DNA of 64,000 bases, taken from positions 19,964,001 to 20,028,000 of the forward strand of contig NC_045707.1 of the NCBI RefSeq assembly GCF_009834535.1, given 5' to 3'. The notes beneath the pieces are model-generated. The model ran no database searches and was not told the DNA's origin. It saw only the letters and a program-made list of their open reading frames with translations. Origin of the DNA: Camelus ferus (lineage: Eukaryota). Shown here in pieces: positions 30 to 35,850 of the stretch (the first letter of the stretch is position 1; every line of letters starts with the position of its first letter). The translations under genes were made by a program, and so were the position numbers.

Positions 30-2283
30 GCTTTTCTGCTCCCCTCCTGTGGCTCCAGAATTGCCTGATTCGAGCAGCAGATGATCGGGAGGAGGTTGGT
101 AAGTGGATAAATGACGGTTTCAGGAGGACTGGAGGCTCCTGGAGACCTGGTTGTGAAATGGAGGACCAGTTCTTTCTTCACAGCTTCACCATATGATTGT
201 TGACCCCGTCCTAGGCTGCTCCCAGGCAATTCCACTGGTGCCACTGACGGCAGAAAATGAGGAAGCAATGGAAAATGAACAGTTTCAGCAGCTGCTGCGA
301 AAGCTAGGGGTTCGGCCTCCTGCCTCTGGGCAGGTAAATACACCAGTTATTGCATCAGCCAAGCCCCGCTGGTGCTACTTCAAGATACACCTCCCACTCC
401 TCCTCCTCTTTTCCTGTCATCTCTGACCGTGACTCCTATAACAGCCGTCCTGCAAGTCTTCCTCCCTCCTGTCTTCCACTCTGCCCCCTGAGTTGTCTTT
501 CTAAAATACAGCCTTGATTATATCACTCTCCCGTCCAGAGCACTTGCTGGTCCCCCACTGTTTGCAGAGCAGAATTCACAGCCTCCAAGGGGCATGCCTG
601 GCCTTGGCCGACCTTTGCAGCCTCACAGCCATGCCACCCGCTCTCCTGCCTTACTCTGTAGTCATCCTGGGCTAATTTCCATCCTCCAAACAGTAGGCCT
701 TTTCATACCATCAAACGTTGGCCTTTTCATACTATCAAACAGTTGATCGTGCCAGTCCCTCAGCTGGAAGGCTCCAACTGCAGACACGCGGTGACATGCA
801 CGTCACCTGTCTTCCTGATGAACTTGCACCGAGTCAGTTCAAGAGTCAATTCAAGAGTCAGTTCAGTCGTCACCTCCTCAGAGAAGCGGTTTCTATTACT
901 CTTTCAACCCCTGAAGCGGAAGTACAGTTGCCTCTGGGTTTCCAAGGAGGGGATTGGTTCCAAGACCCACTGCAAATACTGAAATTCACAGATGCTCATC
1001 TCTTTTATAAAATGACATAATATTTGCATATAACCTATGCGTATCATCTGTAGATTATTTATAATGCCTAACACAATGTAAATGCTATGTAAATAGCTGC
1101 CAGTGTACAGCAAATTCAAGTTTTGCTTTTTGGAACTTTTTGGAATGGTTTTTTTGTGAATATTTTTGAATCACTTGGTTGAATCCGTGGGTGTGGAACC
1201 CATGGATATGGAGGACCGACTGTAGTCACTTTGGTGGCTGGAATTTGTTCATTCCCATAGTATAGCCCCAATCCTGTGGTCTTACAGTACATTGGTTCTT
1301 TCTCCCATTAGATTGTGAGTTCCTTGAGAGCAAGGATCAAATCTGACTTAGGAGATCCCCAGGGGCCATTATTCATTTACTTACATAATTGACAACTATA
1401 TTTACTGGGAACCTCCTGATGTATCAGACACTGTGCTCAACACTGGGCATATGCTGGAAAAATAAGCAATAAGTAGAGTTCACAACCCTTGTGGAGCTTC
1501 ACCAGTGTAAGCTCCACATGTAAGCTCATGTTTATTCAGTGAGTAATATCAAAATCTGGTGAACCAGAGGCTGCTCCTTTCCCACCACTCTCATTTTCAA
1601 CTTCTTTGCCCCCGTAGGAAACCTTCTGGCGAATTCCAGCCAAGCTGAGTCCCACCCAGCTCCGGAGGGTGGCAGCTTCTTTGAGACAGCCAGAGGAGGA
1701 GGAAACGCTTCAGCCTGTACTAGAACCCAAGGTCCCTGGAGAGCAAGGCCCGGAGGAGGAGCACCAACAGGAGCACCGAGCACAAGCTCTGCGGGCCCTC
1801 CTGTTAGCCCGGAAAAAGAAAGCAGGCCTGGTGTCCCCGGAGGGTAATAGCAGGACCACTCTTGTATTGAGTGCTTACTACGTGCCAGCCGTGTGAATCA
1901 AGAGGGCTGATAGAGTATTTTGAGTCTATGAGGACCTAGTTCCCTAATTTTATTCCTCCTGTGGTCATTTCAGAGGAAGGGACTGATGAAGGGAAAGAGC
2001 AGCTGAAAGTGGCACCCAGGAAGAGACAACTGCTGGACAGTGATGAGGAAGATGAGGACAGGAGCCCAGGTAGAGCGTCTGGTCGGACCTGCTTTCTCCT
2101 CTGCCCTCTAGCACTCCTCTCTCCAGTCCTGAAGATAAATGCTGCCATCCCCCTTCTCCCTTAACATGTTTAGGTAACCTCTCTCTTCTTACCCCTGACA
2201 TTCCCACAGCACCAGAGTCGGGAGCTCCAGGAATCAAAAAGAAGAAGCAGTTTCAAATTGAGGATGAAGATGAGAGCGACTGA
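30..2283 (+). CDS. TIMELESS: TIMELESS circadian/replication-fork protein, last five coding exons (5'-partial)
   Basis: Exons 30-98, 215-333, 1618-1843, 1974-2069 and 2210-2283 (TGA), all AG/GT bounded with consistent phases. They translate to ...[21 protein letters not shown] / [39 protein letters not shown] / [17 protein letters not shown]... / ...[15 protein letters not shown], matching the recalled TIMELESS C-terminus. ATTAAA at 2862. Confidence 0.96.
925..1222. mobile_element. MER2-like (TcMar-Tigger) DNA transposon fossil in TIMELESS intron
   Basis: Begins cagttgcctctggg...ggattggttccaagacc and ends ...ggaggaccgactg; TA on both sides. Family assignment is from recalled consensus. Confidence 0.75.
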
Positions 2284-3074
2284 GGAGCCAGGAGTCTGGG
2301 GGAAGAGATAGATCTGTTTTTGGGTGGTGAATTTAAATCTGAGTTTGGAGGGCGGTACAGGATCCAGAAATTCCTCTTCCTGGACAGGAACAGTGGAGTC
2401 CTGGGCTTGCCTATCGATTTACAGTCCAAGAAGTTCAGGCAACAGTGTTGGCTTCCTGTATAGTCACTTCTTCTGTCTCCCCGTTTTATCAGTGGGCCTC
2501 AGTAGCTCTCTGGAGACTTACTCCTCTTCTCATTTCTTTGAGTTGATAGCACCCCTTAGCAAATGAGAGGAGGGAGTGAAATATAGAGGGCATCTTGGAC
2601 CCCTCTTACCAGTCTGTTCCTTTTGGCTTTCAGCTGGAGGGGGCTCACAGCACCAAATGGGGAGTTCTGTGACATGATGGGTGAGGTGTAGGACCATCTT
2701 TGAAGGGCACCAGATGCTCCCATCCTCATTTTCTTTCCTGTGATCACCCTCTAGACACCAGATTGAGCCCAGTTCCTGCATTTGAAGTAGGGTTGGGATG
2801 CAGTACTCTCCAGATGATGAGTGTGTTTGGTTTATATTTGGTATTGATTTAAACATGTAAAATTAAAAGTTGCCCATGTTGATCCGACTTGCCAATCTGT
2901 CTAAGTACCCCAGCTCTCCACCTGTTACATTCATGGAAGAACTTTTAACTACTAGGGTTAAAAGAGACTTACCAGCCTTCCCTTTTCTCCCACTTTCCCT
3001 ATAGAAGACACAGAAAAACATTTTCACCTCAAGATCCTCTGTCTAGGATAAATCTTTAGTGACAAGAGCATGCA

Positions 3075-3920
3075 TGAGAACAGGCACATGAAAAGAAGCT
3101 CAATATTAATCATAGAGAATCACAAATCAAAACCATAATGACAGATCACCTGACACCTGTCAGAACGGCTATCATTAAAAAGACCACAAATAACAAACGT
3201 TAGCAAGGATGTGGAGAAAAGGGAACCCTTGTACACTGTTGGTAGGAATGTAAATTGGTGCAGCCATGTGGAAAACAGTATGAAAGTCCTCAAAAAAACT
3301 AAAAATAGAACTATCATGACTCAGCAATTCTAAGCTTGGGTATACATCTGAGAAAAATGAAAACGCTAATTCTAAAAGATACATGCACCCCCATGTTCAC
3401 AGCACCATTATTCATGATTGCCAACATAAGCAATTCGTGTCCGTCAACAGATGAATGAATAAAGAAGACTCACACATGTACACACAATGGAATACTACTC
3501 AGCCATAAAAAAGAATAAAATTTTGCCATTTGCAGCAACATGGAAGGACTTGGAGGATATTATGCTTAGTGAAGTAAGCCAGAGAAAGATAAAGCCTGTG
3601 TGATATCACTTATATGTGGAATCTAAAAAATAAGCTACTGAATGTAATGAAAAAGAGACAGACTCATAGATAAAGAGAACAAACCAGTGGCATTACAGTG
3701 GGAAGGGGTGAGGGGCAAAATAGGGGTAGGGAAGTAATAGGTACAAACTATGTATAAAATAGTTAAGTTAAATGATACATTGTACAGCACAGAATATAGC
3801 CCAATATTTTATAACTATAGATGGAGTATAACCTTTAAACATTGAGTCACTATGTTGTATACCTGAGACCTACATAATATTGTACATCAACTATACCTCC
3901 AAAAAAAAAGAAAAGAAAAA
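3075..3920 (+). mobile_element. LINE-1 3' fragment (ORF2 end, 3'UTR, A-rich tail)
   Basis: Typical L1 ORF2-end text (gaaatcacaaatcaaaacc...acctgtcagaacggctatc...ggagaaaagggaaccct), ending in an A-rich tail at ~3900-3921. Confidence 0.9.
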
Positions 3921-4469
3921 AGCATATGCATCAGGAAGAAGCAGGAGCAACAAGAGAGAAAAAGCCAGTTTGTCAGCACAGAGGTAGACAAAGTCCAGGT
4001 AAGAAAGATGTGAGTAAACCTTGCAAATCTCTTGTCTTTCCTTGTTCTTGGAAGCCATCAGTTCTCTGGCTCCCTTGTGTTTCCAGCTGAGGTAGGGTGA
4101 AGGTAGAATTGTGAAGAAAGCCATTCAGATTAGGGAGAGCCCTCGCAGTAAAGGATGTGTTTCAACTGCCTTGTTTCTCTGACTTGTTTTTTTCCCTTCC
4201 ATAACCTCTAAAGATAGAGGTGAAGCTAAGTCCAGGGTAACTGAAGTTTTCAAGGGCTAAGACACATTTTGCCAGTTAGAGTAAAGTGTATAAACCTTGT
4301 CTCTCCAGGTGTCTTTACCCTCTCCCATTCATACTATAATTATCTTGAATATTTCCTCTCTATATGTTGAGAACCATATAAGGCAATGTAATATTTTATT
4401 TCAATTTCCTAACATAATTAGAAAACTCATGAGAAGATGGATGGTATATAATTATCTGTATTTTTTACC

Positions 4470-5870
4470 CTTTCGGTTGCTTTTTATGGAATCCAGACAA
4501 GCTGAACCCCCAAGAAAGTTAGATGCTTCTTTCAGCCACTCAGAAGAGGAAAGCTGCAGCCAGTGCTGGAACCTGAAGTCTGGAGAGCCAGGGCCTGAGG
4601 AGGAGTGCTGAGCACAAGCCCTGAGGGCCCTCCTGTTAGCCACAAAAGGGAGTAGGCCTGGTGTCCCAAGGGGATGATAGCAGGAAGCACATGTGTTGAG
4701 GACTTACAGTGTACCAGCCATGCTGGTTGAGGGGGCTGACAGTGTTACTTTGATGCCTCCTATTTCAGTGGGAGATCAGGCTGATGGGGACTGGCAACTA
4801 AAAACAGCACCCAAGATTTTTAAGGCAGTGAAAGTATTCTGTATGATACTGTAAAGGTAGATTATACATTATACATTTGGTAAAATCCATAGAACTATGC
4901 AATGCAAAGAGTTGAACCCTAATGCAAGCTTTGGACTTAGGTGATAACAATGAATAATACATAATAATATAAACTAAATAAAAATTTAATATAATAATCA
5001 AATGTAACAAAGGTACCATACCAGTGGAAGATGTTAATGGGAAACTGAGGGGTTGGGAGAGAGGATACTGCTGGGGGGCAGGGGGTGTCTATACTTTATG
5101 CTCAATTTTTCTATAAACTTAAAACTAGTCTAAAATATAAACTCTTAATTAAAACAAGAAACTCATTACCCAAGAAGTGACAACTAATGGGAATTGATGA
5201 GGAACAAGTAGACGAGGACAGGAGTAAAGGTAGAAAGTCTGATTGCGAGGACTTGCCCCTGTCTTCACCCTCTGTCATTTCTCTCCGTCCTGGAGACGAA
5301 CGTACCACCACTTTCCAGCCTCCTGCCATATTGACACAGTCTCTCCTGTCATTCCCAAGGCACCAGAGTTGGAAAGTCAAGGAATTTCAACGGAAAGTCA
5401 TTTTTATATTGAAGATGAGAGTGACGCTGACTGAGGAACTGGAAATGGAGACAGGACCAGTTATGGATGGTGAAGTCAAGTCAGAAATGGAAGAATCTGA
5501 TAGGATCCAAAACTTCCCCAAGCTGGACAGAAGCAGTAGACATTCCCCATGGACGGGGTTGGATATCTCTACATCCAGTTCCCCCAACTTTAGGAGTGTG
5601 TCCCCAGTAGCTCTCTGAAGGCTTACTTCTCTTATTCTTGGAACTGATTTCTTCTTGCTTGTTAAGGGCCCCTCCTGGAACTGAGAGGAGTGAGTAAGAG
5701 AGGAAGAGGAACCCAGGACCACTTCTTGGACAGTTCCCTTTGGCAGTCTGCCAGGGTGGGTTATAGCACCACAGAGGAAGCTCTGTGGCACAATGATGTG
5801 TGGACTTTTGTACCAGTTTTAGGAGGCACCATAAACCATTGTTCATTATTGTCCAGACTGCAGTTTCTCA
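4470..5870 (+). pseudogene. Degenerate duplicate of the last three TIMELESS exons plus 3'UTR
   Basis: 4490-4740 aligns by eye to exon 1618-1843 and its downstream intron (gcacaagccctgagggccctcctgttagcc vs gcacaagctctgcgggccctcctgttagcc). 4775-4816 plus 5168-5230 matches exon 1974-2069; 5355-5435 matches the last exon (gcaccagagt...gaagatgagag...gactga); 5690-5850 matches the 3'UTR at 2570-2720. Contains stops and indels. Confidence 0.85.
4817..5167 (+). mobile_element. Old L1 3'-end fragment inserted into the duplicated TIMELESS pseudo-exon
   Basis: L1M-type 3'UTR text flanked by the direct repeat acccaaga (4809-4816 and 5168-5175), which rejoins the pseudo-exon. Confidence 0.7.
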
Positions 5871-6631
5871 CCTAGAATCCTGGATGAGAAAAGAAGTCAA
5901 TCCCTATAGTTTTGACACAGGCTTAGAAAGAGGTACTATCATGTATTTAATTAGGGTATTTCACTGTAATTAAGAATGTCAAAACTGAAAAGTTGCTCTG
6001 GTTTGATCTGACTTTCTGGTAGGTACTATCATCCCATTGCTCTACCTGTTAAATTCATTGAATAAGAATTATTTTGGGGTCTTTTACCTAGAAATCATTG
6101 GCATCCCTGTCTTTGATCTCCCTGCTTCCCCAGAAGATGTAAAGGAATTTTTCCTGATCTAAGTTTGGGTCTAGAGAAGTCCTTAGGTTGGGGAGAATAT
6201 GGGGCGGGAAAAGCAGTGGCCACAAAGGGAGCAGGCCTGATTGTTGGCATGGGGGCAAAGGTGAGGGCAAAGCCTGAACCACGAAGAGGTGGATAAATAT
6301 TTGTGAATGTTATGTCCTTCACTGTTTTCAGAGGGGTCAACTTTTTTGGCTGGGATAAAGAGAAGATCAGATCTAGAAAGCAGTGATTCAGATCACGGAA
6401 GCACCGAGGCAAAGGACGTGTTCAGACCTCTTTCCTCTGTCCTGTTTCTTCCCGGAGTAGGTGAGTATCACCCACAGCCTATAAGGTCTGATGTCCGGGG
6501 TGATTAAAGTTCCCAAGGGCTAAGACACTTCCTAGCTCTGACCAGTCTCGGTGTCTCTTCATCCCAGGCCTCTCCCCGCTTCCCAACCTGAGCACTGCTT
6601 CTTTCCAGCAGGGCTGTTCTGCTGACCCACC

Positions 6632-7396
6632 ATGGTCCAGGCTGTGCTGCTCCTTTGCTGTGTTTTCCTGTCCCCAGTGGCTGCCTTTCCAAGAAATGGC
6701 CAGAAAGGAGCCTTGAACTTCCAGCCGTCTTTCACAGAAACTGGGCATGCTCTGAACAGGCTCTCCAACCAGATCCCTCTCCCAGATCCCAAGACCTGCC
6801 AGGATCTTTTGGGCATGGCCTCCTCCTTAGCCCCTCTGCCTGAGTACCTATCCAGCTTAGCTCTGGAGGTGGTCCTGGAGGAGGTTGGCTGCCCAACTGA
6901 GGCCCACCTTCTGCAGCTTCAGCTTGTTAAGATGGGAGGAAAGGATACCACTGAAACCCTCATCCGTGAGAGTAAAAAGCACAATGAGGAGGAAGGGACT
7001 GGCATTACTACGGTTGTTCTGAGGGATCAGGGAGGACCCCCAGGGGAGCTGAGGCGGGTCCAGCGCTCAGTTACCCTTCCTGAGGCATGTAGGCTTGAAC
7101 ATAGGTGGGTGCTCTATGAGACAGCAAAACTGATAGCTGAATTTGCTGACAAGCTTTCTTCTACTGAGCTGGTAACAGAACTAAAGGCTTCTGCCATTAA
7201 TGTCACCCAGAAGTGCACGGATGAGTCTTGGAAGCATTTGGAAGCAGTAGGGAAACGGCTGATGAAAAGCCCTGAGGCTAAGGGCCTCACGATGCCTATA
7301 GAAGATCAGATATACTTTGCCAAGCGTACCATAACCCTTCTGCTGCACATTATACTGGAACATATACAGGAAGCTTCTACAGGCTTCATTGGATAA
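6632..7396 (+). CDS. APON: Apolipoprotein N (ApoF-family secreted proprotein), intact 254-aa single-exon ORF
   Basis: Kozak context accATGG; hydrophobic signal peptide MVQAVLLLCCVFLSPVAA; ApoF-family pro-region (C-x-x-L...LAPLPEYLSSLALEVVLEEVGC...LQLQL); furin-type site RRVQR/S. Splice acceptor at ~6608 upstream and ATTAAA at ~7744. It lies between TIMELESS and APOF, where Apon sits in mouse and cattle as I recall. Confidence 0.85.
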   Translation: MVQAVLLLCCVFLSPVAAFPRNGQKGALNFQPSFTETGHALNRLSNQIPLPDPKTCQDLLGMASSLAPLPEYLSSLALEVVLEEVGCPTEAHLLQLQLVKMGGKDTTETLIRESKKHNEEEGTGITTVVLRDQGGPPGELRRVQRSVTLPEACRLEHRWVLYETAKLIAEFADKLSSTELVTELKASAINVTQKCTDESWKHLEAVGKRLMKSPEAKGLTMPIEDQIYFAKRTITLLLHIILEHIQEASTGFIG

Positions 7397-8009
7397 GGAG
7401 AGCCTGTGAGGCATCATATTTCCTTTCTCAAAGGTCTCCGATAGGACTGTACACAAGGACTGAGCACAACAAGTCGTTAGAAATGGACAGAAGTATGCTA
7501 TTCTTTTGATCCTAGAGCTAAAAGACATGTGACCGGAGCCAGCTTTGTCCCCTCTCTTAGCAAGTCCTAGCCGCTATTTTTTCGCCCAATTTCTCTCTCT
7601 TTCAGTTGTCGAATACTGTGGATTTATTATGTACTAGACGTGAAGGATATTGTGACCTTTCCCCATTCATGTGCCATTCACTTTCTAATTGCCCAACTGG
7701 GTACTGTAATTTGCTTATGTTAATTTTTAAACTGAAAAGAGAAATTAAAAGTTGCTTCTATATCAGAATCACAGTTACTTGATCTCTCTTAACTCCGGGT
7801 CTCCATGGCTTCTTTTGTGAACTAGCAATAGAATGTGGCAGGGACATGTTGGAAATGCCAAGGTCTTTTGAGGCTGAGTGTGTGACAAGGGGACAAGGTT
7901 CAGTCAGTACAAATGGACAAACATTTGTAGGAGTCATGCCCTTGCTGATCACTGGGGAAAGCAACCATCTTCCCTCCTCATGGGACAGAGAGCTGGGCAG
8001 AGTGGGTCT

Positions 8010-9400
8010 AGACCTACTAGAGCAGTCTCACTTCTCACTGACTGGATTTTGTGGTAATTTGGGGCCCCATAACTGCATGAAATGAGGTCCATGTGAAGCA
8101 GAGGAAGTCCCTGGTGATCTGGATGGGGAGACCAAGAAGAGAAATAAGGTCCCATTCCTCATTCCAGGCCCCAAACTTAAAACAAAGAGAGGCTGGGGGT
8201 TGTTGGGTAAGATGTCCTCTGACTGAGCCCCGGGCTCCTTCAGACCACAGCCCAAGGGAAACAGTTTGAGTGTTGTCTTCCATTCTAGCGTAGTCCGATC
8301 CAGCTAGGCTTCACCGAGACCCATCATGACCTGCTCCTTTACTGCCTCCTGCTGTACCTTGTGGTTGTCACTTCATGTGGCACCCAGAAAAAGACCTTTT
8401 TCCTCCTCTCTGGGGATCTGGCCACCCTCTGCAGGCTCTTGGTTTTGCCAGATTCTGCTCCCAAAGCCCTTGCCTGGCCTCACCCACTTTGTCCTCCACC
8501 AAGCACGTCTCTGGAGCAGGCTGATCACCAGCCTGATTCCTAGACCCTGAAGCTTCATCTTTACAGCCAGAGAATAGGAAAGCCGTACAAGGTGCCACAC
8601 GGACAGCAGCACAGAGATGGGCTTCGCAGGGGATTCTCTGGTCTCTGTTCTGCAGCTAGTAGGCAGGGAACCTGCCTAATACAGGGATACAGGGAAAGAA
8701 AGATATGCCTTCTCTACCCTAGAATGTTAGTATGAGCAAGAGCAGCGTGGTCCAGCTGTTGCCAGCAGTGGGAATGTGCTGCAAAGTCAGGCACAGCTTT
8801 GTACTCTGCTGCTTTTTTTTTTTTTTAACATTTTTTATTGATTTATAATCATTTTACAATGTTGCGTCAAATTCCAGTGTTCAGCACAATTTTTCAGTCA
8901 TACATGGACATATACACACTCAATGTCACATTTTTTTCTCTGTGAGCTTCCATAACATTTTGTGTATGTTTCCCTGTGCCATACAGTATAATCTTGTTTA
9001 TCTATTCTACAATTTTGAAATCCCAGTCTATCCCTTCCCACCCAGTACTCTGCTGCTTAGAACTACTTCAGTAGACCAAGGAGTGAGGCTGAGGTGGGGC
9101 CATAGACCTGAGCTGCAGCCTTCTGATGATCACGCAAAGGTTGTCTGGGGCCCAGGGGTTACTGGTGAGTTCTGTGCTTAAACCTGCAGCGAAGGCTGGG
9201 GTTCAGCAGCTGATCCAGTATTACTATGAGAAAGAGGCAAATACCCCTCTGTCAGAGACTGAGGAGGAGGGGTTGGGAGGCACCACAGATGTAAATTGCC
9301 CAGGGGTGACAGACAACAACCACGACGTCAGAGGACAAGGCTCCTGAAGAAGTGAACTCAGCTCCTACTCATTGTGGGCCTTATTCAAGGACACTGTTCC
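8010..9400 (+). pseudogene. APOF-like pseudogene (duplicated, two-exon remnant)
   Basis: Exon-1 remnant cagtctcacttctcactgactggattttgtg/gtaatttggg (~8023-8060) matches 21487-21527. The body matches APOF (gattctgctcccaaagcccttgcctggc; ttaaacctgcagcgaaggctggggttcagcagctgatccagtattac...gagaaagaggcaaatacccct) but has many frameshifts and stops and an L1 insertion. Confidence 0.9.
8815..9044 (-). mobile_element. 5'-truncated L1 3' end inserted in the APOF pseudogene, 14-bp TSD
   Basis: Poly-T followed by L1 3'UTR text; perfect direct repeat gtactctgctgctt at 8801-8814 and 9045-9058. Confidence 0.88.
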
Positions 9401-9921
9401 TAGGAATCTTACACTTCGTATAAATAAAGGGGTTACACACAGGAGAAATTAAAGTGAATTAAAAATTATCACCAACTCCTTTGTCCTAATCCTCAGATAT
9501 GGAATGAAATATTCAACTATGAGTATGTCACTCTGTCATTATCCATTCTAGTGAGGAGAATCCTCTTACCTCAAAAAAAAAAAAAAAGTTTTCCTTCATA
9601 ATAAAATTGTGTGGCTTCTTAAATCACACATATGTTTTCTTTATTCTATTAGGTTCTGTGTACTGTAATAAGTCTAGGTTTCCCAAACAAAGATCCGATG
9701 GCCCCAGCAGCAAGAATGCTGCATAGCCCAAGAGATCTTTCTTCGATGTGCTAATCTGTGCATTGAAAATCAGAGGTGACATAAATCTTAACAGTCTTTG
9801 CTGAATTTCCAGGTGGTTTGAATGAGAATGATCCTCTGATTAAGGAAGGGAAGAGGGACCTGGGGGTGAATTAGAGCCAATTACAACCTTAGGAGTTTTA
9901 TGACTTCTTGCACAATTTCTA

Positions 9922-10085
9922 GACCACTGCTATCCAACAGAACTTTGAAGGACGATGGAAATGTTCTGTATCTGTGCTGTCCAGTATGGTGGATGCAAGC
10001 CCCATATGTCCATTGGGCACCTGAAATGTCAGTAGTGCGACTGAAAAACTGAATCTGTTTCTTTCCATGTTTTAAATTATTAATC
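9922..10085. mobile_element. MER3-like hAT DNA transposon fossil
   Basis: ctgctatccaacagaacttt...gatggaaatgttctgtatctgtgctgtccagtatgg resembles the recalled MER3 consensus. Confidence 0.6.
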
Positions 10086-10125
10086 ATAGTTTTAATTCTT
10101 GGTATTACAGGACAAGGTCTCTAGG

Positions 10126-10504
10126 TGTTACAGACTGAATTGTATCCCCCTCAAAATTCATACGGTGAAACCCTACCCCACAGTGTGACTACATTTGGGG
10201 AGGGGGCCTTTAAAGAGGTAGTTAAGGTTAAATGAGATCATAAGAGTGGGACCGTAATCCAATGGGACTGGTGTCATAAGAAGTGGAAAAGACAGCAGGA
10301 ATGCATACACGCAGAGGAAAGGCCGTGTGAAGGCACAGCCAGAAGGCAGCCATCTGCAAGCCAAGGAGAGATATCTCAGGACTAACTAAACCTGCCAATT
10401 CCATGATCTTGGACTTCTAGCCTCCAGACAGTGAGAAATAAATTCCTTTTGTTTAAACCACTCAGTCTATGGTATTTTGTTATGGAGTTCTCACAGACTG
10501 ACGC
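10126..10504 (+). mobile_element. MaLR solo LTR (MLT1B-like)
   Basis: Starts tgttacagactgaattgtatccccctcaaaattcat, has an internal AATAAA (~10437) and ends ...cagactgacgca (TG...CA termini). Confidence 0.8.
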
Positions 10505-10649
10505 ATTAAGTATAGGCATTTTTCACCTATTTTCTGGTATCCTGTGAGTCCATTCAATCTGAAAAATTTTTCTTCTTCATTCCCCTCCTCCAAAAAGAAC
10601 CTCTTATAACTGAAGAAAATAATTTTCTCACTTCCTCTTTTTTTAGTTT

Positions 10650-10870
10650 AGTTTTTTAAAATTGTGGTGAAAAACACATAACATAAAATTTACCATATTA
10701 ACCATTTCTAAGTGTACATTTCAGTAATATTAGCTATTCGCATTGTTGTGCAGCCTGTTTCCAGAAACTTTTCATCATATAAAATTGCAAATCTGCCCAT
10801 TAAACAGCAACTCCCCATTTCTACCACCCCTCAGCCCCAGCAACCACCCTTCTACCTTCTGTGACTTTGA
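10650..10870 (-). mobile_element. L1MA/MB-type 3'UTR fragment
   Basis: aattgtggtgaaaaacacataacataaaatttaccatattaaccatttctaagtgtac... is a characteristic antisense L1 3' end. Confidence 0.75.
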
Positions 10871-12401: not shown

Positions 12402-15400
12402 GATACCTGTAATAAAACAGGCAGATTTTAAATGTACAGTTCGAAGCACTTTGACACACACAAAAACAAGCACACACAAAGATAGATACATAGATAAATT
12501 ACCACATCAATCAAATACAAAGCATGTCCTTCACTTTGGAATGTTCCCAGTTAATTCCACTCCCCGCCCTCTTCTCTCATGACTCTCTCCCCACATACAA
12601 ACATTGGACTAATTTCTATCCGTGCAGTTTAGTGTTGCCTCTCTGTAATTTCACACACATGGAATCACAGAATATGTCTTCTCTCGAGTTTGACTTCTAC
12701 TCAGCCGTCTATGATTTATCAGTGTCCTTGCGTGTATATCAGTAAATTAGAGCTTTTTAATGCCGAGTAATATATCAGTTTGTAAATGTATAATGGTTGT
12801 TTTTAAAATTCATGTGCCTGTTAGTGGATATTTGGATAGTTTCCAATTTGGGGCTATTATAGATAAATATGCTATGAACATACTTGTCTTTTATGGGACG
12901 TGTGTTATCATTTCTCTTGGGTAAATATTAAGAAGAAAAACTGCTAGGCAATAAGGTGTGTATATATTTAACCTTATAAGAAATTGCCAGTTTTCCAAAG
13001 TGATTGTACCAATGTATGAAAGTTCTAGCTGATTCTCATCAACACACTTGACATTATGTCTTTCTAGTTTTAGCCATCCTAGTGAGTATCTCCTAATGGT
13101 ATTAATTTATATTTCTTTGATGACTTACTGCACATCTTTTGGCCATTGTTACCTCCTCTCTTGTGAAGTGTCTGTTCAAGTCTTTTGTCCATTTATAAAA
13201 CGGAGTTGCTTGCTTATTTAATATTGTGTGTCTATATGCATATTGTATGTATCATACCACTGATATAAATTATAGTGGCATATGGTCCTCCTTCAGTATC
13301 CGAGGGGGATTGTTTCCAGGACCCTCCGCCCATACCAAAATTTGCAGATGCTCAAGTCTCTTACATAAATGTCACAGTACAGTTGAGCCTCCATATTCCA
13401 GGTTCCACATCCATGGATATTGGCTGTTTATCCCTGATATAAATTTCACACACATATCATATGTGTTAGAAATCCTTTGTCAGATATATATTTACAAGTA
13501 TTTCCTTTGCACTATGCCTTGCCTCTTAATTTTCACAGCAGCAGAAGCTTTAATTTTGAAGTCCAATTTACTGATTTTTAATTTTATGGTTAATGCTTTT
13601 TATTGTGGTAAAATATACATAACATAAAATTTACCACTTTAACCAATGTAAGTGTACAATTTAGTGACATTAAGTACGTTCACACTGTTGTACACTGTTA
13701 CCATGTCCATAAACAGAACTTTTTCTTTATCTTTCCAAACTGAAATTCTGTACCCATTAACACTAACTCCCCATTCCCCACTGTCCTCTGTAGGTACTTC
13801 ATGAAAGTGGAATCATATAATATTTGTCTTCTTGTGTCTAGCTGANNNNNNNNNNNNNNNNNNNNNNNNNNNNNNNNNNNNNNNNNNNNNNNNNNNNNNN
13901 NNNNNNNNNNNNNNNNNNNNNNNNNNNNNNNNNNNNNNNNNNNNNNNNNNNNNNNNNNNNNNNNNNNNNNNNNNNNNNNNNNNNGTTGTGTGAACTGGTA
14001 TTTCATTGTGGTTTTGATTAGCATTTTCCTAGTGTTTGGTAATGTTGAGNNNNNNNNNNNNNNNNNNNNNNNNNNNNNNNNNNNNNNNNNNNNNNNNNNN
14101 NNNNNNNNNNNNNNNNNNNNNNNNNNNNNNNNNNNNNNNNNNNNNNNNNNNNNNNNNNNNNNNNNNNNNNNNNNNNNNNNNNNNNNNNNNNNNNNNNNNN
14201 NNNNNNNNNNNNNNNNNNNNNNNNNNNNNNNNNNNNNNNNNNNNNNNNNNNNNNTTAGCGTCCTTTGATGCACAAAAGTATAAAAATTAATTAATTTTAA
14301 TTTGAGTTTTTAATGAAATCCAATTTATTTATTATTTCTTTTGTTGCCTGTGTTTTTAGTGTCACATCTGAGAAATCACTGCCAAATGCAAGGTCACGAA
14401 GCTTCCTCCTATGTTTTCCTCTAAGAATTTTAGTTTTAGCTCTTATGTTTAAGTATTTGATCCTTTTTGAGTTATATTTCATATTTGGTATAAGAGAAGG
14501 GTCAAACTTTATTATTTTGCATGTGGATATCCAGTTGTCCCAGCACCATATGCTCCATTGAGTGGTTTCAACACCCTCATAAAAAAATCATTTAACTATA
14601 TCCACAAAGATTTACTTCTGGGTTCTCTATTCTATTTCATTGGTCTATGTGTTTATCTTTATGCCAATATCACACTGGGTTTTGTTTAGTTTTTTTTTTT
14701 TTTTTTTGCAAATTTTCTTTTCTTTTTTTTAATTAAAGTTTTTTGTTTTTCTCATTGATTTTTATAAGTTCCTGATATATTAAGCATAATTTCTTATCCA
14801 CATATCTGAGTTAGGGCAAAACTAGAATTACTTTCAGAAAATACTTGCCCAAGCATATTGTCTTGGGAGACAAACCTTGTTGAGTTGTGTGTCCTAGTTG
14901 GTATCTTCATTTATAAGAAAAGGAATTCTCTCACCGTAGCAAAAGCATACAAGTATGGCTTTAATTGGCCTTGCAGAATAGCTCCTATGAGGTACTTGTC
15001 ATTAAGACAATAGCACACTCTTTNNNNNNNNNNNNNNNNNNNNNNNNNNNNNNNNNNNNNNNNNNNNNNNNNNNNNNNNNNNNNNNNNNNNNNNNNNNNN
15101 NNNNNNNNNNNNNNNNNNNNNNNNNNNNNNNNNNNNNNNNNNNNNNNNNNNNNNNTTTGGGGGAAAAAAAAAACCCACTAGGATTTTGGCAAGGAGTGCA
15201 TCAAATTTTTTAGTCTCTTTGGGTTGTAATGACATCTTAAGAATAGTAAGTCTTCCAGTCCATGGGCTTGATGTCTTTCCCGTTATATATGCCTTCTTTA
15301 ATTTCTTTCAGCCATGTTTTGTAACTTTCATTGTACAAGTCTTTGGCCTCCTTGGTTAAGTTTATTCCTAATTATTTTATTCTATTTGATGGCTGTTGTA

Positions 15401-16977
15401 AAAAAATTTTTTTTTATTTCTTTTTCAGATTTTCCATTGTTAGTGTATAGAAATGCAACTAATTTGGGGTGTTGATTTTGTTGATCCTGCAACTTTTCTT
15501 AATTTGTTTATTAATTCTAACAAGTGTGTGTGTGTGCGCGAATATTTAGGGTTTTCTACATATATGATCATATCTTCTGCAAACAGAGATAATTTTGCTT
15601 GGANNNNNNNNNNNNNNNNNNNNNNNNNNNNNNNNNNNNNNNNNNNNNNNNNNNNNNNNNNNNNNNNNNNNNNNNNNNNNNNNNNNNNNNNNNNNNNNNN
15701 NNNNNNNNNNNNNNNNNNNNNNNNNNNNNNNNNNNNNNNNNNNNNNNNNNNNNNNNNNNNNNNNNNNNNNNNNNNNNNNNTTTTTTCTATTTCTAGTTTG
15801 TTGATGTAAAATGCCTTTCTGCATCAATTGAGATGATCAATTGAGATGATTTTTTTCTCCTTTATTCTGTTAATGTGATGAATTACACTGGTTGATTTTC
15901 ATATATTGAGCCACATTTATATTCTAGAAATAAATAAATGGTGTGTAATACTTCTAATATGCAACCATATTCAGATTGTAAGTGTTTTGCATTAATATTC
16001 TCAAGAGATACAGGTCTGTGGCTTTCTTTTCTTGTAGTGTCCTTGTCTGGCTTTGATATCAGGGTAATGCTGGTCTCCTAGAATTAGTTATAAATGTTCC
16101 CTCCTCTTATTTTGGAAGAGTCTGAGGAGGATTAGTATTAACTCTTCTTTAAATGTTTGGTAGAATGCACCAATAAAGCCATTTGGTCCAGGGCTTTCCT
16201 TTATTGAGAAGTTTTTTACTGATTCAGTCACCTTACTAACTGTAGGTCCATTCAGATTTTCTGTCACTTCATGATTCAGTCTTGGTATCTTGTATGGTTC
16301 TAGCAATTTGTCTGTTTCATCTGGATTACCCAATTTACTGGCATACACCTATTCATTGTACTCACTTAAAATCATTTTTGTTTCTGCAAAACAAGTAATA
16401 ACATTCCCACTTTCATTTCTTATTAAATTGAGATATAGTTGACATATAACTTTATATTAGTTTGAGGTGTACAACATAATGATTCAATATTTGTATACAA
16501 TGTGAAATGATCACAATAAGTCTATTTAACAACCCTCGGCACACAATGATACAATGTTTTCCTTGTGATGAGAACTTTCAAGATTTACTATTTTGGTAAT
16601 TTTGGAATATAAAATAGAGTATTATTGATTATACTAATTAATAATAATAATTATTATTATACAGTATAGATACCATGCTGTACATTCCATCCCCAGGACT
16701 TACTTATTTTATAAGTGGAAGTTTGTGCTTTTGACCTCCTCTATCCATTTTGCCCACTGCCCACCATCTGCTTCTGGCAATCACCAATCTGTTCTTTGTA
16801 TCTATGAGTTCAGTTTTTGTTTTTAAGATTCCACATTCCACTTATGATATAAGTGAGATCATAAAGTATTTGTCTTTCTCTGTCTGACTTATTTCACTTG
16901 GTGTAATGCCCTCAAGGTCCATCCATGTTGTCACAAACAGCAAGATTTTATTCTTTTTATGCCTGAATATTCTACTG

Positions 16978-16983
16978 TGTGTG

Positions 16984-17017
<34 letters not shown>

Positions 17018-17023
17018 TACACA
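16978..17023. repeat. Compound (TG)/(TA)/(CA) microsatellite
   Basis: gtgtgtgtatatatatatatatatacacacacacacacacatacac seen directly. Confidence 0.9.
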
Positions 17024-18344
17024 CCACAGTTTCTTTATCTATCTATTCATTGATGGACACTTAGGAAGCTTCTCTTGTAAATAATAGAACTGCAATGAGC
17101 ATGGGGGTGCATATANNNNNNNNNNNNNNNNNNNNNNNNNNNNNNNNNNNNNNNNNNNNNNNNNNNNNNNNNNNNNNNNNNNNNNNNNNNNNNNNNNNNN
17201 NNNNNNNNNNNNNNNNNNNNNNNNNNNNNNNNNNNNNNNNNNNNNNNNNNNNNNNNNNNNNNNNNNNNNNNNNNNNNNNNNNNNNNNNNNNNNNNNNNNN
17301 NNNNNNNNNNNNNNNNNNNNNNNNNNNNNNNNNNNNNNNNNNNNNNNNNNNNNNNNNNNNNNNNNNNNNNNNNNNNNNNNNNNNNNNNNNNNNNNNNNNN
17401 NNNNNNNNNNNNNNNNNNNNNNNNNNNNNNNNNNNNNNNNNNTTGGAATAATGTCGTTCAGATCCCCAGCGCATTTTTAAATCAGATCGTTTGTTTGTTT
17501 GTTTTTTTGCTATTGGATTGTATGAGTTCCTTACTTATTTTGGATATTGTCCCCTTATCAAATGTATAGATTGTAAGTATTGTCTCTCATTCAGTAGGTT
17601 GTATCTTCATTTTGTTAATGGTTTCCTTTGCTATGCATCCCACTTTTATTACTGATGTTAGTAATTTGAGTTTCTCTCTCTCTTTTTTTTAATTCAATGT
17701 AGTCGAAGGTTTGTCAATTTTGTCGATTTTTTTTTAAAGAATCAATTTTGGAAAAAAAAGAATCAATTTTGGATTTATTGATTTTATCTATTGCTTTTCT
17801 ATTCTCTGTTTTATTTATCCTGCTCTAATCTTTATCATTTCCTTCCTTATGCTAGCTTTAGGTTTAGTTTGTCCTTCAGTCTTTAGTCTTCTTTAATCAC
17901 TTTTGATAATTGTTTGTAGTTTTCAGTGCACAAGTTTTATACTTCTTTTGTTAAATTTATCCCTAAGCATTTTATTCTTTTTGATGCTATCAGAAATGAA
18001 ACTATCTTGTAAATTTAATTCTCAAAGTATTCACTACAAATGTATATAAATGTAATTTATTTTGTATATTGATCTTGTATTCTACAACTTTGCTGAACTC
18101 ACTTATTTTAATAATTTTTTGTGTGGACTCTTTGAGAGTTTTCTATACTGCAATATCATGTTATCTGCAAACTGAGATATTTATTTCTTCCTTTCTAATC
18201 TGGATGTCTTTTATTTCATTGTCTTGCTAAGTCACTCTGGCTAAACCCTCCAGTACAATGTTAAATAGAAGTGGCAAGAGTAAGCATCTTTGTCTTGTTC
18301 CTTCTTTTAGGAATTTTATGTGGTTTTTTGTTTTGTTTTTTATC

Positions 18345-18498
18345 TTTCCTTGCTTTTTTTTTTAATTTTGGGGAGAGGTAATTAGATTTATTTATTTATC
18401 TACTTCATTTATTTTTTTTAATGGAGGTACTGGGGATTGAACCCAGGATCTCGTGCATGCCAAGCACGTGCTCTACCACTAAGCTACACCCTCCCCCC
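18345..18498 (-). mobile_element. Vic-1-like SINE
   Basis: Reverse complement of the same SINE (aatggaggtactggggattgaacccagg...ctaccactaagctacaccctcccc). Confidence 0.85.
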
Positions 18499-18869
18499 GA
18501 ATTTTATGTGTTTTTTAACAGCATTTTAATTAGAATTGTTTTTCTAAGTTAACTTTTCAATGTATGCTCCTAGAACACAGAAATATTTTTATATTAATAT
18601 CTTATCCTGTCACCTTCCTAAATTCACTTATTAGTTCTGGTAGTTTTTTTAAAAAATTTGGCTCTTTAGGATTTCCTACATAAACAATTATGCTGTTTTT
18701 AAATAAATACAGTTCTGATTCTTCTTTTCTACTTTTACGCCATTAATTTTTTATTATTGCCTCATTACACTACTTAAGACTCCCAGTACAATGGTGATAA
18801 AGTGGTAAGCATAGATATTCTTGCTTTTTGATAGATTCTAGGAGAAAGGGTTAAATATTTACCCTTTGT

Positions 18870-19945
18870 TACGTTGCTTCACAGAAACTGTAGAGTCCTC
18901 GGGATTCCCCAGGGATTTAGTGTCTGGTCAGTTCAGTAGGGCTGAACCCCTTCGCACCTAGTTCTTGCTACTTCCAATTTTGGAAGTGTGTCCTTACAGA
19001 TCTCCCCCTCTTCTTTCTTCTGTCTGCTCTTAGTTGTCAAGGGCCACTCCTGAGAACTGAGAAGTGAAATAAATAGAGGAAAGGACTCTGAGCCCCCGCC
19101 CCACCTCTGGCCTGTTTTCTTTGGCTGTCTGTCAGAAGTGAGTGACAGCACCAAAGAAACTTTTTGCCGTAACGCTATGTAGGAATCTGTACCAGTTTCA
19201 GAAGGCATCCAATACCTTCTTTCCCTAATTTTTGGACTGTAGTTATGGCTAGACCCCAAATGAAACCAAATGTTTGGAGTTTTGGTTAGATTTGGAAAGT
19301 GTTACTACCTAGCTGATGAACATGTTTCATTTATGGTTTGCATTGGAATTAGAAAAGTGAGAAATAAGAGTTGCACTGATTTCATTTAACTTACCAGTCT
19401 TTTCAGTTTTCCTGGCCTCCACTCAATGTATCTTTTTGAAAAAGAACTTATGGAATGTTTTGGAGGTCTCTTACCAGAGATCATCAGCCTTTCTGCCTTA
19501 TCCATTCTCCCCTTCAGAAGATACAGAGGAACTTTTCCTCATCTCATGTATAGGATCCAGGGTAAAACCTTAGGACAACAAGGATACGGGGCAGAACTAG
19601 CAGGGCGAAAAGGGGAAAGGCCTATTTGTCAGTATGGGCCAAAGGTGAGGAGGATAAAGTCTGGACCTAGAAGAGATGTATAAATATTTGCAAATGCTAT
19701 GTCCTTCACTGTTTTGGGCACTGTCAGCATTCTGGCTTCCTCGTGATTCTGGCTGGGGTAAGGGAGAAAGAGCAATTAAAAAATTCAGAAAAGTCATCCC
19801 AGTCATGAAGATACCAAAGCAAGGGAGATGTTTGGACTTTTTTGTTCCTCTGGCTTGTTTCTTCCTCAAAACAGTTGAGGATCTCTCATGGCCTTTTAAG
19901 AGTGGGAGTGAAGTATGTCCAGAGTAACTGAAATTTCCAAGGCCT
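18870..19945 (+). repeat. Third copy of TIMELESS 3'UTR plus the APON-upstream spacer
   Basis: 18885-19220 matches 2390-2720 and 5570-5835; 19430-19945 matches 2925-3065 + 3955-4275 and 6100-6525. Confidence 0.75.
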
Positions 19946-20053
19946 GACACTTCCTAGCTCTGACCAGTCTCGGTGTCTCTTCATCCTAGGCCTCTCCCCG
20001 CTTCCCAACCTGAGCACTGCTTCTTTCCAGCAGGGCTGTTCTGCTGACCCACC

Positions 20054-20830
20054 ATGGTCCAGGCTGTGCTGCTCCTTTGCTGTGTTTTCCTGTCCCCAGT
20101 GGCTGCCTTTCCAAGAAATGGCCAGAAAGGAGCCTTGAACTTCCAGCCGTCTTTCACAGAAACTGGGCATGCTCTGAACAGGCTCTCCAACCAGATCCCT
20201 CTCCCAGATCCCAAGACCTGCCAGGATCTTTTGGGCATGGCCTCCTCCTTAGCCCCTCTGCCTGAGTACCTATCCAGCTTAGCTCTGGAGGTGGTCCTGG
20301 AGGAGGTTGGCTGCCCAACTGAGGCCCACCTTCTGCAGCTTCAGCTTGTTAAGATGGGAGGAAAGGACACCACTGAAACTCTCATCCATGAGAGTAAAAA
20401 GCATGATGAGGTGGAAGGCACTGGCAATACTATAGTCATTCTGAGGGATCTTTGGGGGACCCGCAGAGAAGCTTGGATAAATCCAAAACTCAGCCACTCA
20501 CCCTGAGGAGTGTGTTAATGATGGTGAGTACACCCACTGGAGTGGCTGGTCTACCTGTTAGCTCAGATGGTGGTTGAATTTGCTGAGAAGCAAACAGCTT
20601 CCATGTTGCTAGCTGATGACACAATTTAAAGCGTTGCTATCAACAACCCCTAGAACTGCAGATATGAGTCTTGGAAACATGTTGAAGAATTAGACAAAGG
20701 CTGAAGACACCTCCACGTTATGGGCCTCTCAGTGTCTATAGATGATTACAATATAATTTATCAAATGTTCCACAGTTATTCTGAAGTGTTTTGGGGGAAA
20801 CTGTTTCAGGAATTTGTCCAGATTATTTAA
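20054..20830 (+). pseudogene. Second APON copy, truncated (150-aa ORF 20054-20506); 3' half decayed
   Basis: Identical to 6632-6945 up to 20367. A +1 shift near 20450, a TAA at 20478-20480 in the ancestral frame and loss of the furin site follow; a degenerate C-terminal remnant (EWLVY..AQMVVEFAEK) continues to ~20830. Confidence 0.85.
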
Positions 20831-21771
20831 TTCAGATATTCAATGTCACCTAGGTGACAAGTCTGATTTCCCACGACTCTGTTCAAGGATGGAACACAGT
20901 AAGTAGGCAGAATGTTGGACACCACTTAGGACAGATGCATGTTCTTTATTTCATCCCAGTGCTAAAACACACAGGTGACTGGTATTAACCTTGCCCCTCT
21001 CCACTTAGTAGCTCTCAGTCCTTATTTCTCATTCCATTTTCCCTTTTTTTCTTTTCTTTATTTCAGTTATCCTATGCTGGGCATGTAATAAGCATGAGAA
21101 ATATTTTGACTTGTTTTTCATTCATCTACCCTGTGCTAAACCCCCAACTTGACAATATAGCTTGCTAATTTAATTTTTAAACTGAAAAGAGAAATAAAAT
21201 AAAAGATCATGAAAGACATCTAATCTGTTCTGATTCTGTCTCCTTTCTCCTATCATGGACTAGAGTAGGAATGTGGCAGGGAATTATAGGAAATGCCAAA
21301 GAACAGGGTTTTAGGTATTGAGGTTGAGTGTGACAAGGGGACGAGGTTTGAGAAGCCAGCACAAACAGACAAATATTTGCAAAGATTACATCTCTTACTG
21401 GTGATAGGGGAAAACAAATACCGACTTTCTTCATGGAACAGAGGAGTAGGCAGAACAGGATCGAGGAGCTACCAAACCTAGCAAGGCAGTCTCACTTCTT
21501 AATCGCTGGACTGTGTGGTAATTTGGGATCCCCTACAAATGGGTGCAAGTAAGGCAGAGGAAAACCCTGATGACCTGAAGATTGAGAAGGCCAAGTGGGA
21601 ACAATTGGGTTGCATTTCCTGTTTCTTAGGCCTTTACCTGAAAAGAACAGAAGTTTGGAGGTAATAGATGAGATGTGCCCTGAGTCCTGGGCTCCTTTCA
21701 GACCACAGCCCTTAGGGACATGGTTTGTATGTTTCTGGTTTCTCCCCTCTCCAGCTCACTCTGTTCCAGAC

Positions 21772-22675
21772 ATGCGTGGCCTCAGACTCATCATGATGCT
21801 GATTGAGCTACTTCTTTGCTACTATCCTGCACGCTGTGGATGCCATTTCATATGGAAACCAGACAAATGTCTTGATGCATCTTCCCTCATCCTTGGGATC
21901 CTGGCCACCTTCCTCAGACCCCTTGTCTTGCCAAATGCTGCTCCCAAAGTCCCTGCCTGGCTTCATCCACATGGCCCCTCTACCCAAGTTTCTGGTAAGC
22001 CTGCCACTGATGATCGCCCTGGAGGAAACGGGCTGTCAGGCTGAGGTACGGGTCCTGCAGCTTCAGCTCTATCGCCAGGTGGGTGTAAATGCTACCCAGA
22101 TCCTCATGAGACATCTTCAAGAGCTCGAGAAAAGCAGAAGCACAGGAAGGAGAGTGTCAGTGGATGCCCTGGCCTCTGCTCTGCAGCTGTTGGCCAGGGA
22201 GCATCCAGGCCCACAGAGGGCCCGACGAGCCTTCTCTGTCAAGGACTGTGAACAGGAGCAGGAGCAGGGTGTGTACAATACAGTCCAGCTGTTGCCGGTA
22301 GTGGGAACCTTCTACAGCCTGGGCACAGCATTGTATTATGCTGCTCAGAACTGCCTGGACAAGGCCAAGGAACGGGGCCAAGATGGGGTCATAGATCTGG
22401 GTTATGATCTTCTGATGGCCATGGGTGGGCCCAAGGGACTACTGATCGGTATTGCACTTAAACCTGCAGTGAAGTTTGGGGTTCAACAGCTGATCCAGTA
22501 TTACAGTGAGAAAGAGGCAAACACCCCTCCACCAGAGACCAGCAAGGAGGTCTTGGGAGACACCTTAGTTGCGAGTGACCTGGAAGAAACAACTACCATG
22601 GTCCCTTTGGTATCAGAACTAGTCAGTTCAGCACCTTCCTGGAGTTGGAACTTATTCAAGGGCTATGGCTTATAA
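21772..22675 (+). CDS. APOF: Apolipoprotein F (syntenic copy); signal peptide and body are in different frames in this sequence
   Basis: ATG 21772 gives MRGLRLIMMLIELLLCY. The rest (ILHAVDAISYGNQTNVLMHLP...RARR/AFSVKDC...GYGL*) is in another frame from 21824. Exon 1 remnant ends at 21517 (GT donor), exon 2 acceptor at 21754, AATAAA at 23022. Confidence 0.85.
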
Positions 22676-22794
22676 TCTGGGTATGGGAATCTTGGGGTAT
22701 AAAAGAAGGTGGTAAACACAATTACTAGATCTCGTATTCTGACAAGCTCTGTGTGTGTTCAAAATCCAAATCTCTGAAACGTTATCAAGGAGAA

Positions 22795-23030
22795 AGGCAG
22801 TGCTGTAAAATGTAGGAACTTTAAAGTTTGCAGTTTGGCTGAGGACTTGGTTTTGAATCCAAGCTCCACTTGTTAGAGCTTCAGTGATCGCTGACTAGTA
22901 ACTTAAATTCTTTCTCCAAACTCGGTTTTTAAGATTTCTAAAGTGAGGATGATTTTCACTTCAGTGGGTTATGCGGACATTAAAAACGATACGTTGTACT
23001 AATGCTTAGAACGATACCATCAATAAACAG
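22795..23030 (+). mobile_element. MIR SINE fossil supplying the candidate APOF polyA signal
   Basis: MIR-like core (ttgaatccaagctcc...aagtgaggatga...gttatg..gacattaaa...aatgcttagaac...caataaa). Confidence 0.55.

Positions 23031-25527: not shown

Positions 25528-35850
<10,323 letters not shown>

Follow-up and report, generated by a model that had tools for sequence, protein, structure and literature searches.

Reciprocally decayed copies of an APON-APOF unit between TIMELESS and STAT2 in placental mammals

Introduction

We analyzed the region downstream of TIMELESS in a 64-kb stretch of the Camelus ferus genome (NC_045707.1, positions 19,964,001 to 20,028,000), here called the window; all camel positions count from its first letter. 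The region carries APON and APOF, and in orthologous loci STAT2 follows. ApoN is a paralogue of ApoF and is homologous to it in the proprotein region; mouse Apon lies 12 kb upstream of Apof, and human APON is a pseudogene (PMC3282742). Genes, order and strand in camel are like those of the mouse and human pair, and both camel proteins match the Pfam family PF15148. The literature that we found treats APON and APOF as a simple two-gene pair, whereas the camel region also holds a dead copy of each gene and copied tails of TIMELESS. A reading made from the camel sequence alone had proposed that three tandem units, each composed of the TIMELESS 3′ end, APON and APOF, are hidden here, and that different units lost different genes. 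We report that the living APON and the living APOF lie in different copies of a duplicated unit, and that placentals share this arrangement.

Results

Collinear copies in the camel region

Positions 1-24000 of the window were compared with themselves by BLASTN. For the spacer of unit 1 a more sensitive setting and shuffled controls were used. All features and matched blocks are listed in Table 1. Unit 2 (4487-9400) and unit 3 (18870-22675) matched each other on the same strand, collinearly and at about 65-77% identity, with an offset of about 13.4 kb. Unit 1 and unit 2 shared five collinear blocks of the same strand, offset by about 3 kb. At the sensitive setting, four segments of the unit 1 spacer (2997-3030, 3934-3976, 3981-4192 and 4200-4263) were collinear with 19510-19950 in unit 3; the shuffled sequences gave 1 hit in 30.

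Every homologous block was a single match in the window. Because the blocks match once and are made of TIMELESS exon, APON and APOF sequence, they are not interspersed repeats. The self-comparison thus found collinear homology off the diagonal at the offsets expected by the sequence-only reading, and an origin from interspersed repeats is excluded. The three copies of the TIMELESS 3′ untranslated region (UTR) and of the spacer upstream of APON, also claimed there, were borne out by the BLASTN blocks, the sensitive spacer matches and the 3′UTR tree described below.

APON and APOF survive in different units

Unit 2 contains an intact APON, whose match to PF15148 (Table 1) compares with a curated cut-off of 27 bits. 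The APOF behind it is dead. Read in the APOF frame, it is interrupted by 5 stops and by 11 frameshifting indels, which include a 244-bp insertion. Unit 3 shows the reverse state. Its APON-like gene has 6 frameshifts and 5 stops by lesion count, and 7 stops past codon ~135 in the tblastn alignment; the truncated APON-like open reading frame (ORF), with 150 open codons in camel, still scored 118 bits against PF15148. The APOF of unit 3 has an open body, which scored 238 bits and is 100% identical to the annotated Camelus bactrianus apolipoprotein F. Both assignments are as had been read from the sequence: an intact APON with a dead APOF in unit 2, and a broken APON with the best-preserved APOF in unit 3. 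APON and APOF are 29% identical in amino acid sequence over ~190 residues, so the split between the two genes is much older than the duplication of the unit.

The TIMELESS copy of unit 2 begins at ~4487 and includes copies of coding exons, which extends the 3′UTR copy given earlier. No copies of TIMELESS exons were detected in unit 3, where the region upstream of 18870 is repeat-rich and holds gaps.

Two observations concern the camel gene models. The Camelus ferus APON protein model (310 amino acids) contains a stretch of ~56 residues, LQLVKMGGKDTT...SVTLPE, twice. The window has no such internal repeat, and the one in the model is likely an artefact of assembly or of the model.

Camel APOF has a 2-nt deletion near 21826 when compared with buffalo, squirrel, anteater and tenrec. 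The deletion puts the conserved start codon and signal peptide (21772-21830) out of frame with the 281-codon body. The C. bactrianus APOF model reads through the deletion and is one codon shorter; that of C. ferus begins at an internal Met. Camel APOF may be failing, or another start may be used.

Orthologous units in other placentals

Loci of ~20 kb around APON or APOF were fetched from other mammals. The six further placentals (buffalo, whale, squirrel, sloth, anteater and aardvark) represent Laurasiatheria, Euarchontoglires, Xenarthra and Afrotheria, and across them both units were found in the same reciprocal state as in camel. An orthologue of unit 2, with a TIMELESS tail copy, an intact APON and an APOF-like sequence with stops, is collinear in buffalo, whale, sloth and aardvark. 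An orthologue of unit 3, with a dead APON and an intact APOF followed by STAT2, is present in buffalo, anteater and squirrel. Aardvark unit 3 has a 3′UTR copy of TIMELESS and a broken APON-like part, and the locus ends inside the dead APON.

The tree of TIMELESS 3′UTR sequences resolved into three clades by unit (100/100 for unit 1, 88/87 for unit 2 and 99/98 for unit 3), each with sloth and the cetartiodactyls in species order. In the tree of APOF-like DNA (1.5 kb), unit 2 and unit 3 were split with 100/100 support and the species tree was recovered within each. Common lesions point the same way. An identical 1-nt insertion is present in the dead APOF of all five unit 2 sequences (camel, buffalo, whale, sloth and aardvark). 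Four of the five also have TGA at the position of APOF-body codon 182, an Arg codon in APOF; in aardvark this region is deleted. At APON codon 142 a stop is found in all five unit 3 sequences, as TAA in camel, buffalo, squirrel and anteater and as TGA in aardvark.

The orthologous units, the trees that group by unit and the common lesions indicate that the duplication and both losses came before Afrotheria, Xenarthra and Boreoeutheria diverged. The reciprocal duplicated unit is a pan-placental feature and not a camelid one; a camelid-specific duplication is ruled out by the orthologues of units 2 and 3 in other placentals. Tandem duplication with reciprocal pseudogenisation, which leaves the living APON and APOF in different units, had been proposed from one genome; collinear paralogy, orthologous units, unit-wise trees and common lesions now support it.

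Some public records of these loci have features of their own. In the Choloepus didactylus locus, 4064-20460 (unit 2 and part of the inter-unit stretch) is inverted relative to TIMELESS with unit 1 and to unit 3, either by a real inversion or by an error in scaffold orientation. Public models from horse, tarsier and pangolin have an APON-like N-terminus that matches the dead unit 3 APON and is fused to APOF. Among them, the horse entry bears the name 'Timeless circadian regulator'. The fusions are probably annotation artefacts produced by the hidden unit structure. In each of two deer mice (Peromyscus leucopus and P. maniculatus), one contig encodes two APON-like proteins. Those of P. leucopus are 96% identical to each other, and the deer-mouse pair may reflect either a recent extra duplication or conversion of the whole gene.

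Unit 1 and the end of TIMELESS

Unit 1 contains the true end of TIMELESS, followed by the spacer upstream of APON. An L1 had been thought to split this spacer. What was confirmed is an interspersed-repeat insertion of later date, as its distribution among sloth, buffalo and whale indicates (Table 1). Homology of camel unit 1 ends at 4265, ~100 bp short of the expected APON ATG. In sloth, unit 1 extends to APON codon ~57, and the APON fragment lies at 17270-17580 (minus strand) of the Choloepus didactylus locus and has a stop. No APON homology above that of shuffled controls was found in camel 4266-4486 (~220 bp) or in the equivalent segments of buffalo and whale, and no APOF remnant was seen in unit 1. 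Of the proposed three-unit array, the TIMELESS tail and spacer of unit 1 therefore stand, as does the lack of APON coding sequence in camel; a once complete unit 1 is one of two possible readings.

Unit 1 may never have been full. The TIMELESS tail and spacer, with the first ~170 bp of APON, would then come from a separate short tandem duplication (~2-2.5 kb), and the large duplication of 3′UTR, APON and APOF would be another event, so that the locus has two full units and one partial unit. We consider this quite possible, while leaning slightly against it. The points where unit 1 homology stops in camel and in sloth agree with it, and so does the midpoint-rooted 3′UTR tree, which sets unit 1 apart from units 2 and 3. 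The presence of TIMELESS exon copies in unit 2 but not in unit 3 would likewise follow from different 5′ ends of the two duplications. However, unit 3 may have lost its exon copies in the stretch before 18870, which is rich in repeats and holds gaps, the three-copy tree has no root, and a single triplication followed by deletion yields the same picture. A full unit with a later deletion and a separate smaller duplication fit the history of unit 1 equally.

Age of the duplication

Marsupial APOF proteins were found by an exhaustive profile search, and two of their loci were examined. The Dromiciops gliroides locus has one APOF (10001-10909), 4.5 kb past the end of TIMELESS at 5449 and 9.6 kb ahead of the start of STAT2 at 20498. 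The whole interval from TIMELESS to STAT2 contains neither another Apolipo_F copy nor a copied TIMELESS tail. Antechinus too has one APOF, which follows TIMELESS at a distance of ~3 kb; neither a further Apolipo_F copy nor a copied TIMELESS tail was found within the 20.9 kb fetched, which does not reach STAT2. Between TIMELESS and APOF of Dromiciops, at 6675-6797, there is a weak APON-like relic, in which 42 aligned residues are 47% identical to sloth APON (E 1.6e-4). This match suggests that APON and APOF already formed a pair before the therians split and that Dromiciops has a dead APON.

A protein tree was built for which the dead APOF copies were translated in the frame of the alignment and every break was written as X. 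The rooted tree was (sauropsids,(marsupials,(unit 2,unit 3))), with 68/95 support for the node that joins units 2 and 3. In the tree of APOF-like DNA, the stems of units 2 and 3 sum to 0.145 changes per site, compared with ~0.36 between camel and xenarthrans within each clade, which fits an event on the placental stem.

Alternatively, the duplication may have occurred before marsupials and placentals split, with one unit later lost entirely in marsupials. This is unlikely. Bootstrap support for the node of units 2 and 3 leaves some room for it, and neutral remnants older than ~160 million years may have decayed past detection in marsupials. Yet the best tree placed marsupial APOF outside units 2 and 3, although long-branch attraction should favor the opposite, and the approximately unbiased (AU) test rejected a group of marsupials with unit 3 (p=0.036). 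The two marsupials have one APOF, compact spacing and no TIMELESS-tail copies, and the stem between units 2 and 3 is short. We conclude with moderate confidence that duplication and reciprocal loss on the placental stem are most likely.

Concerted evolution of the APON 5′ part

Across the start of APON, units 2 and 3 of camel are nearly identical and their flanks are not (Table 1). At the 3′ boundary of this tract (20338-20440), 8 of 8 sampled sequence words were present in many DNA runs from several studies and under two organism labels. As far as sampled words tell, the tract is thus not an assembly chimera. Alignment columns 6555-6975 grouped by species: units 2 and 3 of camel (100/100), units 2 and 3 of buffalo (97/95), and the unit 1 fragment of sloth with sloth unit 2 (~91/90). 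Columns 6990-7396 grouped by unit. In AU tests, with groups named after the trees had been seen, grouping by unit was rejected in the 5′ part (p=8e-6), and pairing by species was rejected in the 3′ part (p=1e-6 for camel and 3e-5 for buffalo). Identity between units 2 and 3 was also raised in buffalo, to 86-93%, within the same limits as in camel (~6525 to 7000). The 5′ segment of APON undergoes concerted evolution between units, with the pattern seen independently in buffalo and sloth. Gene conversion accounts for the identity of the first 111 unit 3 codons to APON.

In buffalo, squirrel and anteater, small indels disrupt the 5′ frame of unit 3, which favors neutral conversion over a conserved coding function. 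It is conceivable, but in our view very unlikely, that the 5′ module of the dead unit 3 APON (promoter-proximal sequence with signal-peptide and propeptide codons, ~1.7 kb upstream of APOF) is not inert and has been co-opted as an upstream promoter of APOF, an alternative first exon or a short secreted propeptide. If true, such a role could be what maintains the resemblance to the living APON in several lineages, and the conversion tract would mark a co-opted piece of a pseudogene.

A compact pair in tenrec

Echinops telfairi has a single intact APON (10001-10759) and a single intact APOF (13109-13906), 2.3 kb apart, followed by the STAT2 side. Diagnostic sites were those at which units 2 and 3 differ in the other species. 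At such sites up to ~11630, tenrec has the unit 2 base in 22 of 24, and the other two match neither unit. From ~12030 onward, 41 sites match unit 3 and 8 match unit 2. Tenrec APON is sister to aardvark unit 2 (90/99). The sequence upstream of it resembles the 3′UTR and matches unit 2 best; TIMELESS exons are not nearby.

The simplest reading is that an unequal crossover between units 2 and 3 removed both dead genes in tenrec. The site pattern alone would also be expected from a unit that was never duplicated, as functional copies keep ancestral states, so this reading depends on the presence of both units in aardvark and on afrotherian monophyly. Were the tenrec pair the ancestral unduplicated state, the duplication would date from after Afrotheria branched off. 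We reject this because aardvark has both units with the common lesions and because of the position of tenrec APON next to aardvark unit 2.

The inter-unit stretch and support for the assembly

Units 2 and 3 of camel are separated by a repeat-rich, AT-rich stretch. All five runs of N lie in it, clear of every homologous block and reading frame. For the first four gaps, the flanking sequences have the same orientation and are collinear in whale and/or buffalo. The gap at 17116-17442 lies in a camel-specific insertion whose flanks have no buffalo counterpart, and continuity across it is unverified. Elements resembling short interspersed nuclear elements (SINEs) at 18354-18496 and 12291-12397 lie outside the unit blocks, and copies of them are found at 24205-24355, 28215-28360, 35278-35416, 49098-49234 and other places across the 64 kb.

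Between 19400 and 22700, 98% of sampled words were present in 14 sequencing runs (DNA or of unstated kind) from six studies. RNA runs contained ~40% of this segment, which may be explained by APOF mRNA together with APON mRNA that carries the common tract.

The repeats and gaps, above all the gap without verified continuity, raise the question of whether the matches are due to chance, to independent repeats or to faulty assembly, for instance duplicated haplotigs or a chimeric join at gaps. We practically discount this. E-values go down to 0, the blocks are gene sequence that matches once each, and haplotigs would not differ by the ~30% seen between units. The sampled words, including all of those at the conversion boundary, are present in sequencing runs. 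Both units occur in independent assemblies of the six other species, and this orthology refutes an artefact.

Table 1. Features and paralogous blocks of the camel TIMELESS-APON-APOF region (window positions).
Feature	Position	Strand	Basis
Unit 1: true last three coding exons of TIMELESS	~1618-1851, 1985-2080, 2197-2283; stop codon 2281-2283	+	Translation; alignment to marsupial TIMELESS; orthologous loci annotated TIMELESS
Unit 1: TIMELESS 3′UTR, copy 1 of 3	2284-2860	+	BLASTN matches to unit 2; cross-species and cross-unit matches; unit 1 clade 100/100
Unit 1: APON-upstream spacer	2860-3074 and 3925-4265	+	Collinear matches to 19510-19950 and 5983-6065 / 6493-6528
Interspersed-repeat insertion (~850 bp) splitting the unit 1 spacer	3075-3924		Absent in sloth; present in buffalo and whale
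Unit 2: decayed TIMELESS intron end and last three coding exons (pseudo-exons with stops)	4487-5440	+	Translation, e.g. ...FYIEDESDAD*; orthologous copies in buffalo, whale, sloth, aardvark
Unit 2: TIMELESS 3′UTR, copy 2	5435-5870	+	BLASTN; unit 2 clade 88/87
Unit 2: APON-upstream spacer and promoter region	5870-6631	+	6066-6638 vs 19453-20060, 70%
Unit 2: intact APON coding sequence, 254 amino acids	6632-7396	+	ORF; Pfam PF15148 (Apolipo_F), 277 bits; 52 placental homologues
Unit 2: APOF-upstream region and dead APOF (coding homology ~8327-9292)	7692-9400	+	Stops and frameshifts
Repeat-rich, AT-rich stretch between units	9401-18869	.	Composition; N runs; SINE-like multi-copy matches
Five assembly gaps	13846-13984, 14050-14254, 15024-15155, 15604-15780, 17116-17442		N runs
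Unit 3: TIMELESS 3′UTR, copy 3	18870-19250	+	BLASTN; unit 3 clade 99/98, including sloth
Unit 3: APON-upstream spacer	19430-20053	+	BLASTN
Unit 3: dead APON	20054-20772	+	First 111 codons identical to APON, then stops and frameshifts, including the stop at APON codon 142 position
Unit 3: APOF upstream region and APOF	21143-22675	+	Conserved ATG 21772; body ORF 21803-22675, stop 22673-22675; STAT2 next in orthologous loci
Conversion tract, unit 2 side	6524-6945	+	422 bp, 1 mismatch to 19946-20367
Conversion tract, unit 3 side	19946-20367	+	Flanks ~60-75% identical
Unit 2/unit 3 block	5653-5828 / 19028-19207		69% identity
Unit 2/unit 3 block	6072-7331 / 19458-20772		76.7% identity, E=0
Unit 2/unit 3 block	7692-8487 / 21143-21970		66.8% identity, E 6e-49
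Unit 2/unit 3 block	8604-8813 / 22135-22345		65% identity
Unit 2/unit 3 block	9045-9284 / 22333-22564		72.6% identity
Unit 1/unit 2 block	1675-1923 / 4525-4753
Unit 1/unit 2 block	2014-2081 / 5168-5241
Unit 1/unit 2 block	2194-2286 / 5345-5437
Unit 1/unit 2 block	2485-2528 / 5589-5633
Unit 1/unit 2 block	4230-4265 / 6493-6528

Discussion

The interval between TIMELESS and STAT2 is very probably the remains of an old tandem segmental duplication, followed by reciprocal loss and continued conversion. In the order of events that we infer, an ancestral segment with the TIMELESS 3′ end, the spacer, APON, ~1 kb and APOF would have been copied head to tail on the placental stem, by unequal crossing-over or by a replication-based tandem duplication. 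This would have happened after the marsupial split and before Afrotheria, Xenarthra and Boreoeutheria separated, when APON and APOF were already old paralogues. A copied segment that started inside TIMELESS would have left a dead TIMELESS tail in each downstream copy. Before the crown radiation, APOF would have died in unit 2 and APON in unit 3, so that the one working APON and the one working APOF were left in different copies. Unit 1, with the true TIMELESS end, could have arisen by the same process and a deletion or by a separate shorter duplication. Since then, ~420-480 bp, from the promoter-proximal region of APON through its first ~105-120 codons, would have been homogenised repeatedly in separate lineages, and very recently in camels. 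In tenrec, an unequal crossover between units 2 and 3 would have produced the compact pair.

Several points weigh against this history or its dating. The timing relative to marsupials depends on two loci, one moderate node and a marginal AU result. Branches of the pseudogenes are long, and the tested groups were named after the trees had been seen. Marsupial TIMELESS 3′UTRs do not align, since alignment extends to the coding exons only, so the three-copy tree is unrooted and with it the order of the unit 1/unit 2 and unit 2/unit 3 events. Alignments of the 3′UTR between units are at ~60% identity, near the limit of reliability. Grouping of the APON 3′ half by unit is weakly supported (63/57 to 76/71), and the support of sequencing runs for the assembly consists of sampled words only.

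In the literature that we searched there was no mention of a duplicated unit, of a dead APOF after APON, of a dead APON before APOF or of copies of the TIMELESS tail. A survey of apolipoprotein gain and loss did not treat APON. The duplicated unit is therefore apparently undescribed, while the process (segmental duplication, complementary loss, conversion and unequal crossover) is well known. As in other cases of reciprocal gene loss and in birth-and-death clusters, a multi-gene segment was doubled and the two copies lost different members, so that each gene survives as one functional copy alongside pseudogenes. The present case differs in that the unit is small, with two genes and the truncated tail of a neighbor. 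It also differs in its long-lasting local conversion, and in that the loss was fixed once in the stem and does not diverge between populations or species, so no hidden paralogy arises among placentals.

Conversion between genes and pseudogenes is a general class, with the globin and CYP21 pairs as examples. The APON tract resembles these in being a short, nearly identical stretch in old paralogues that groups by species while its flanks group by copy. Unlike them, the same segment of ~420-480 bp is affected in camel, buffalo and xenarthrans, the direction of conversion in camel restored an open frame in the first 111 codons of the pseudogene, and the tract has no known effect on disease or function.

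What is known of ApoF and ApoN function is unchanged by this history, which is familiar in kind. For annotation, the unit structure bears on the fused APON-APOF models and on APON, which is widely labelled "apolipoprotein F-like". The locus offers an example of a reciprocal loss fixed in the stem, with a conversion segment active for ~100 million years and a pseudogene-purging crossover in tenrec. The order TIMELESS-APON-APOF in placentals would be the survivor of a duplicated two-gene unit, and the duplication would account for the gap of 12-15 kb between APON and APOF and for the TIMELESS-like and apolipoprotein-like debris within it.

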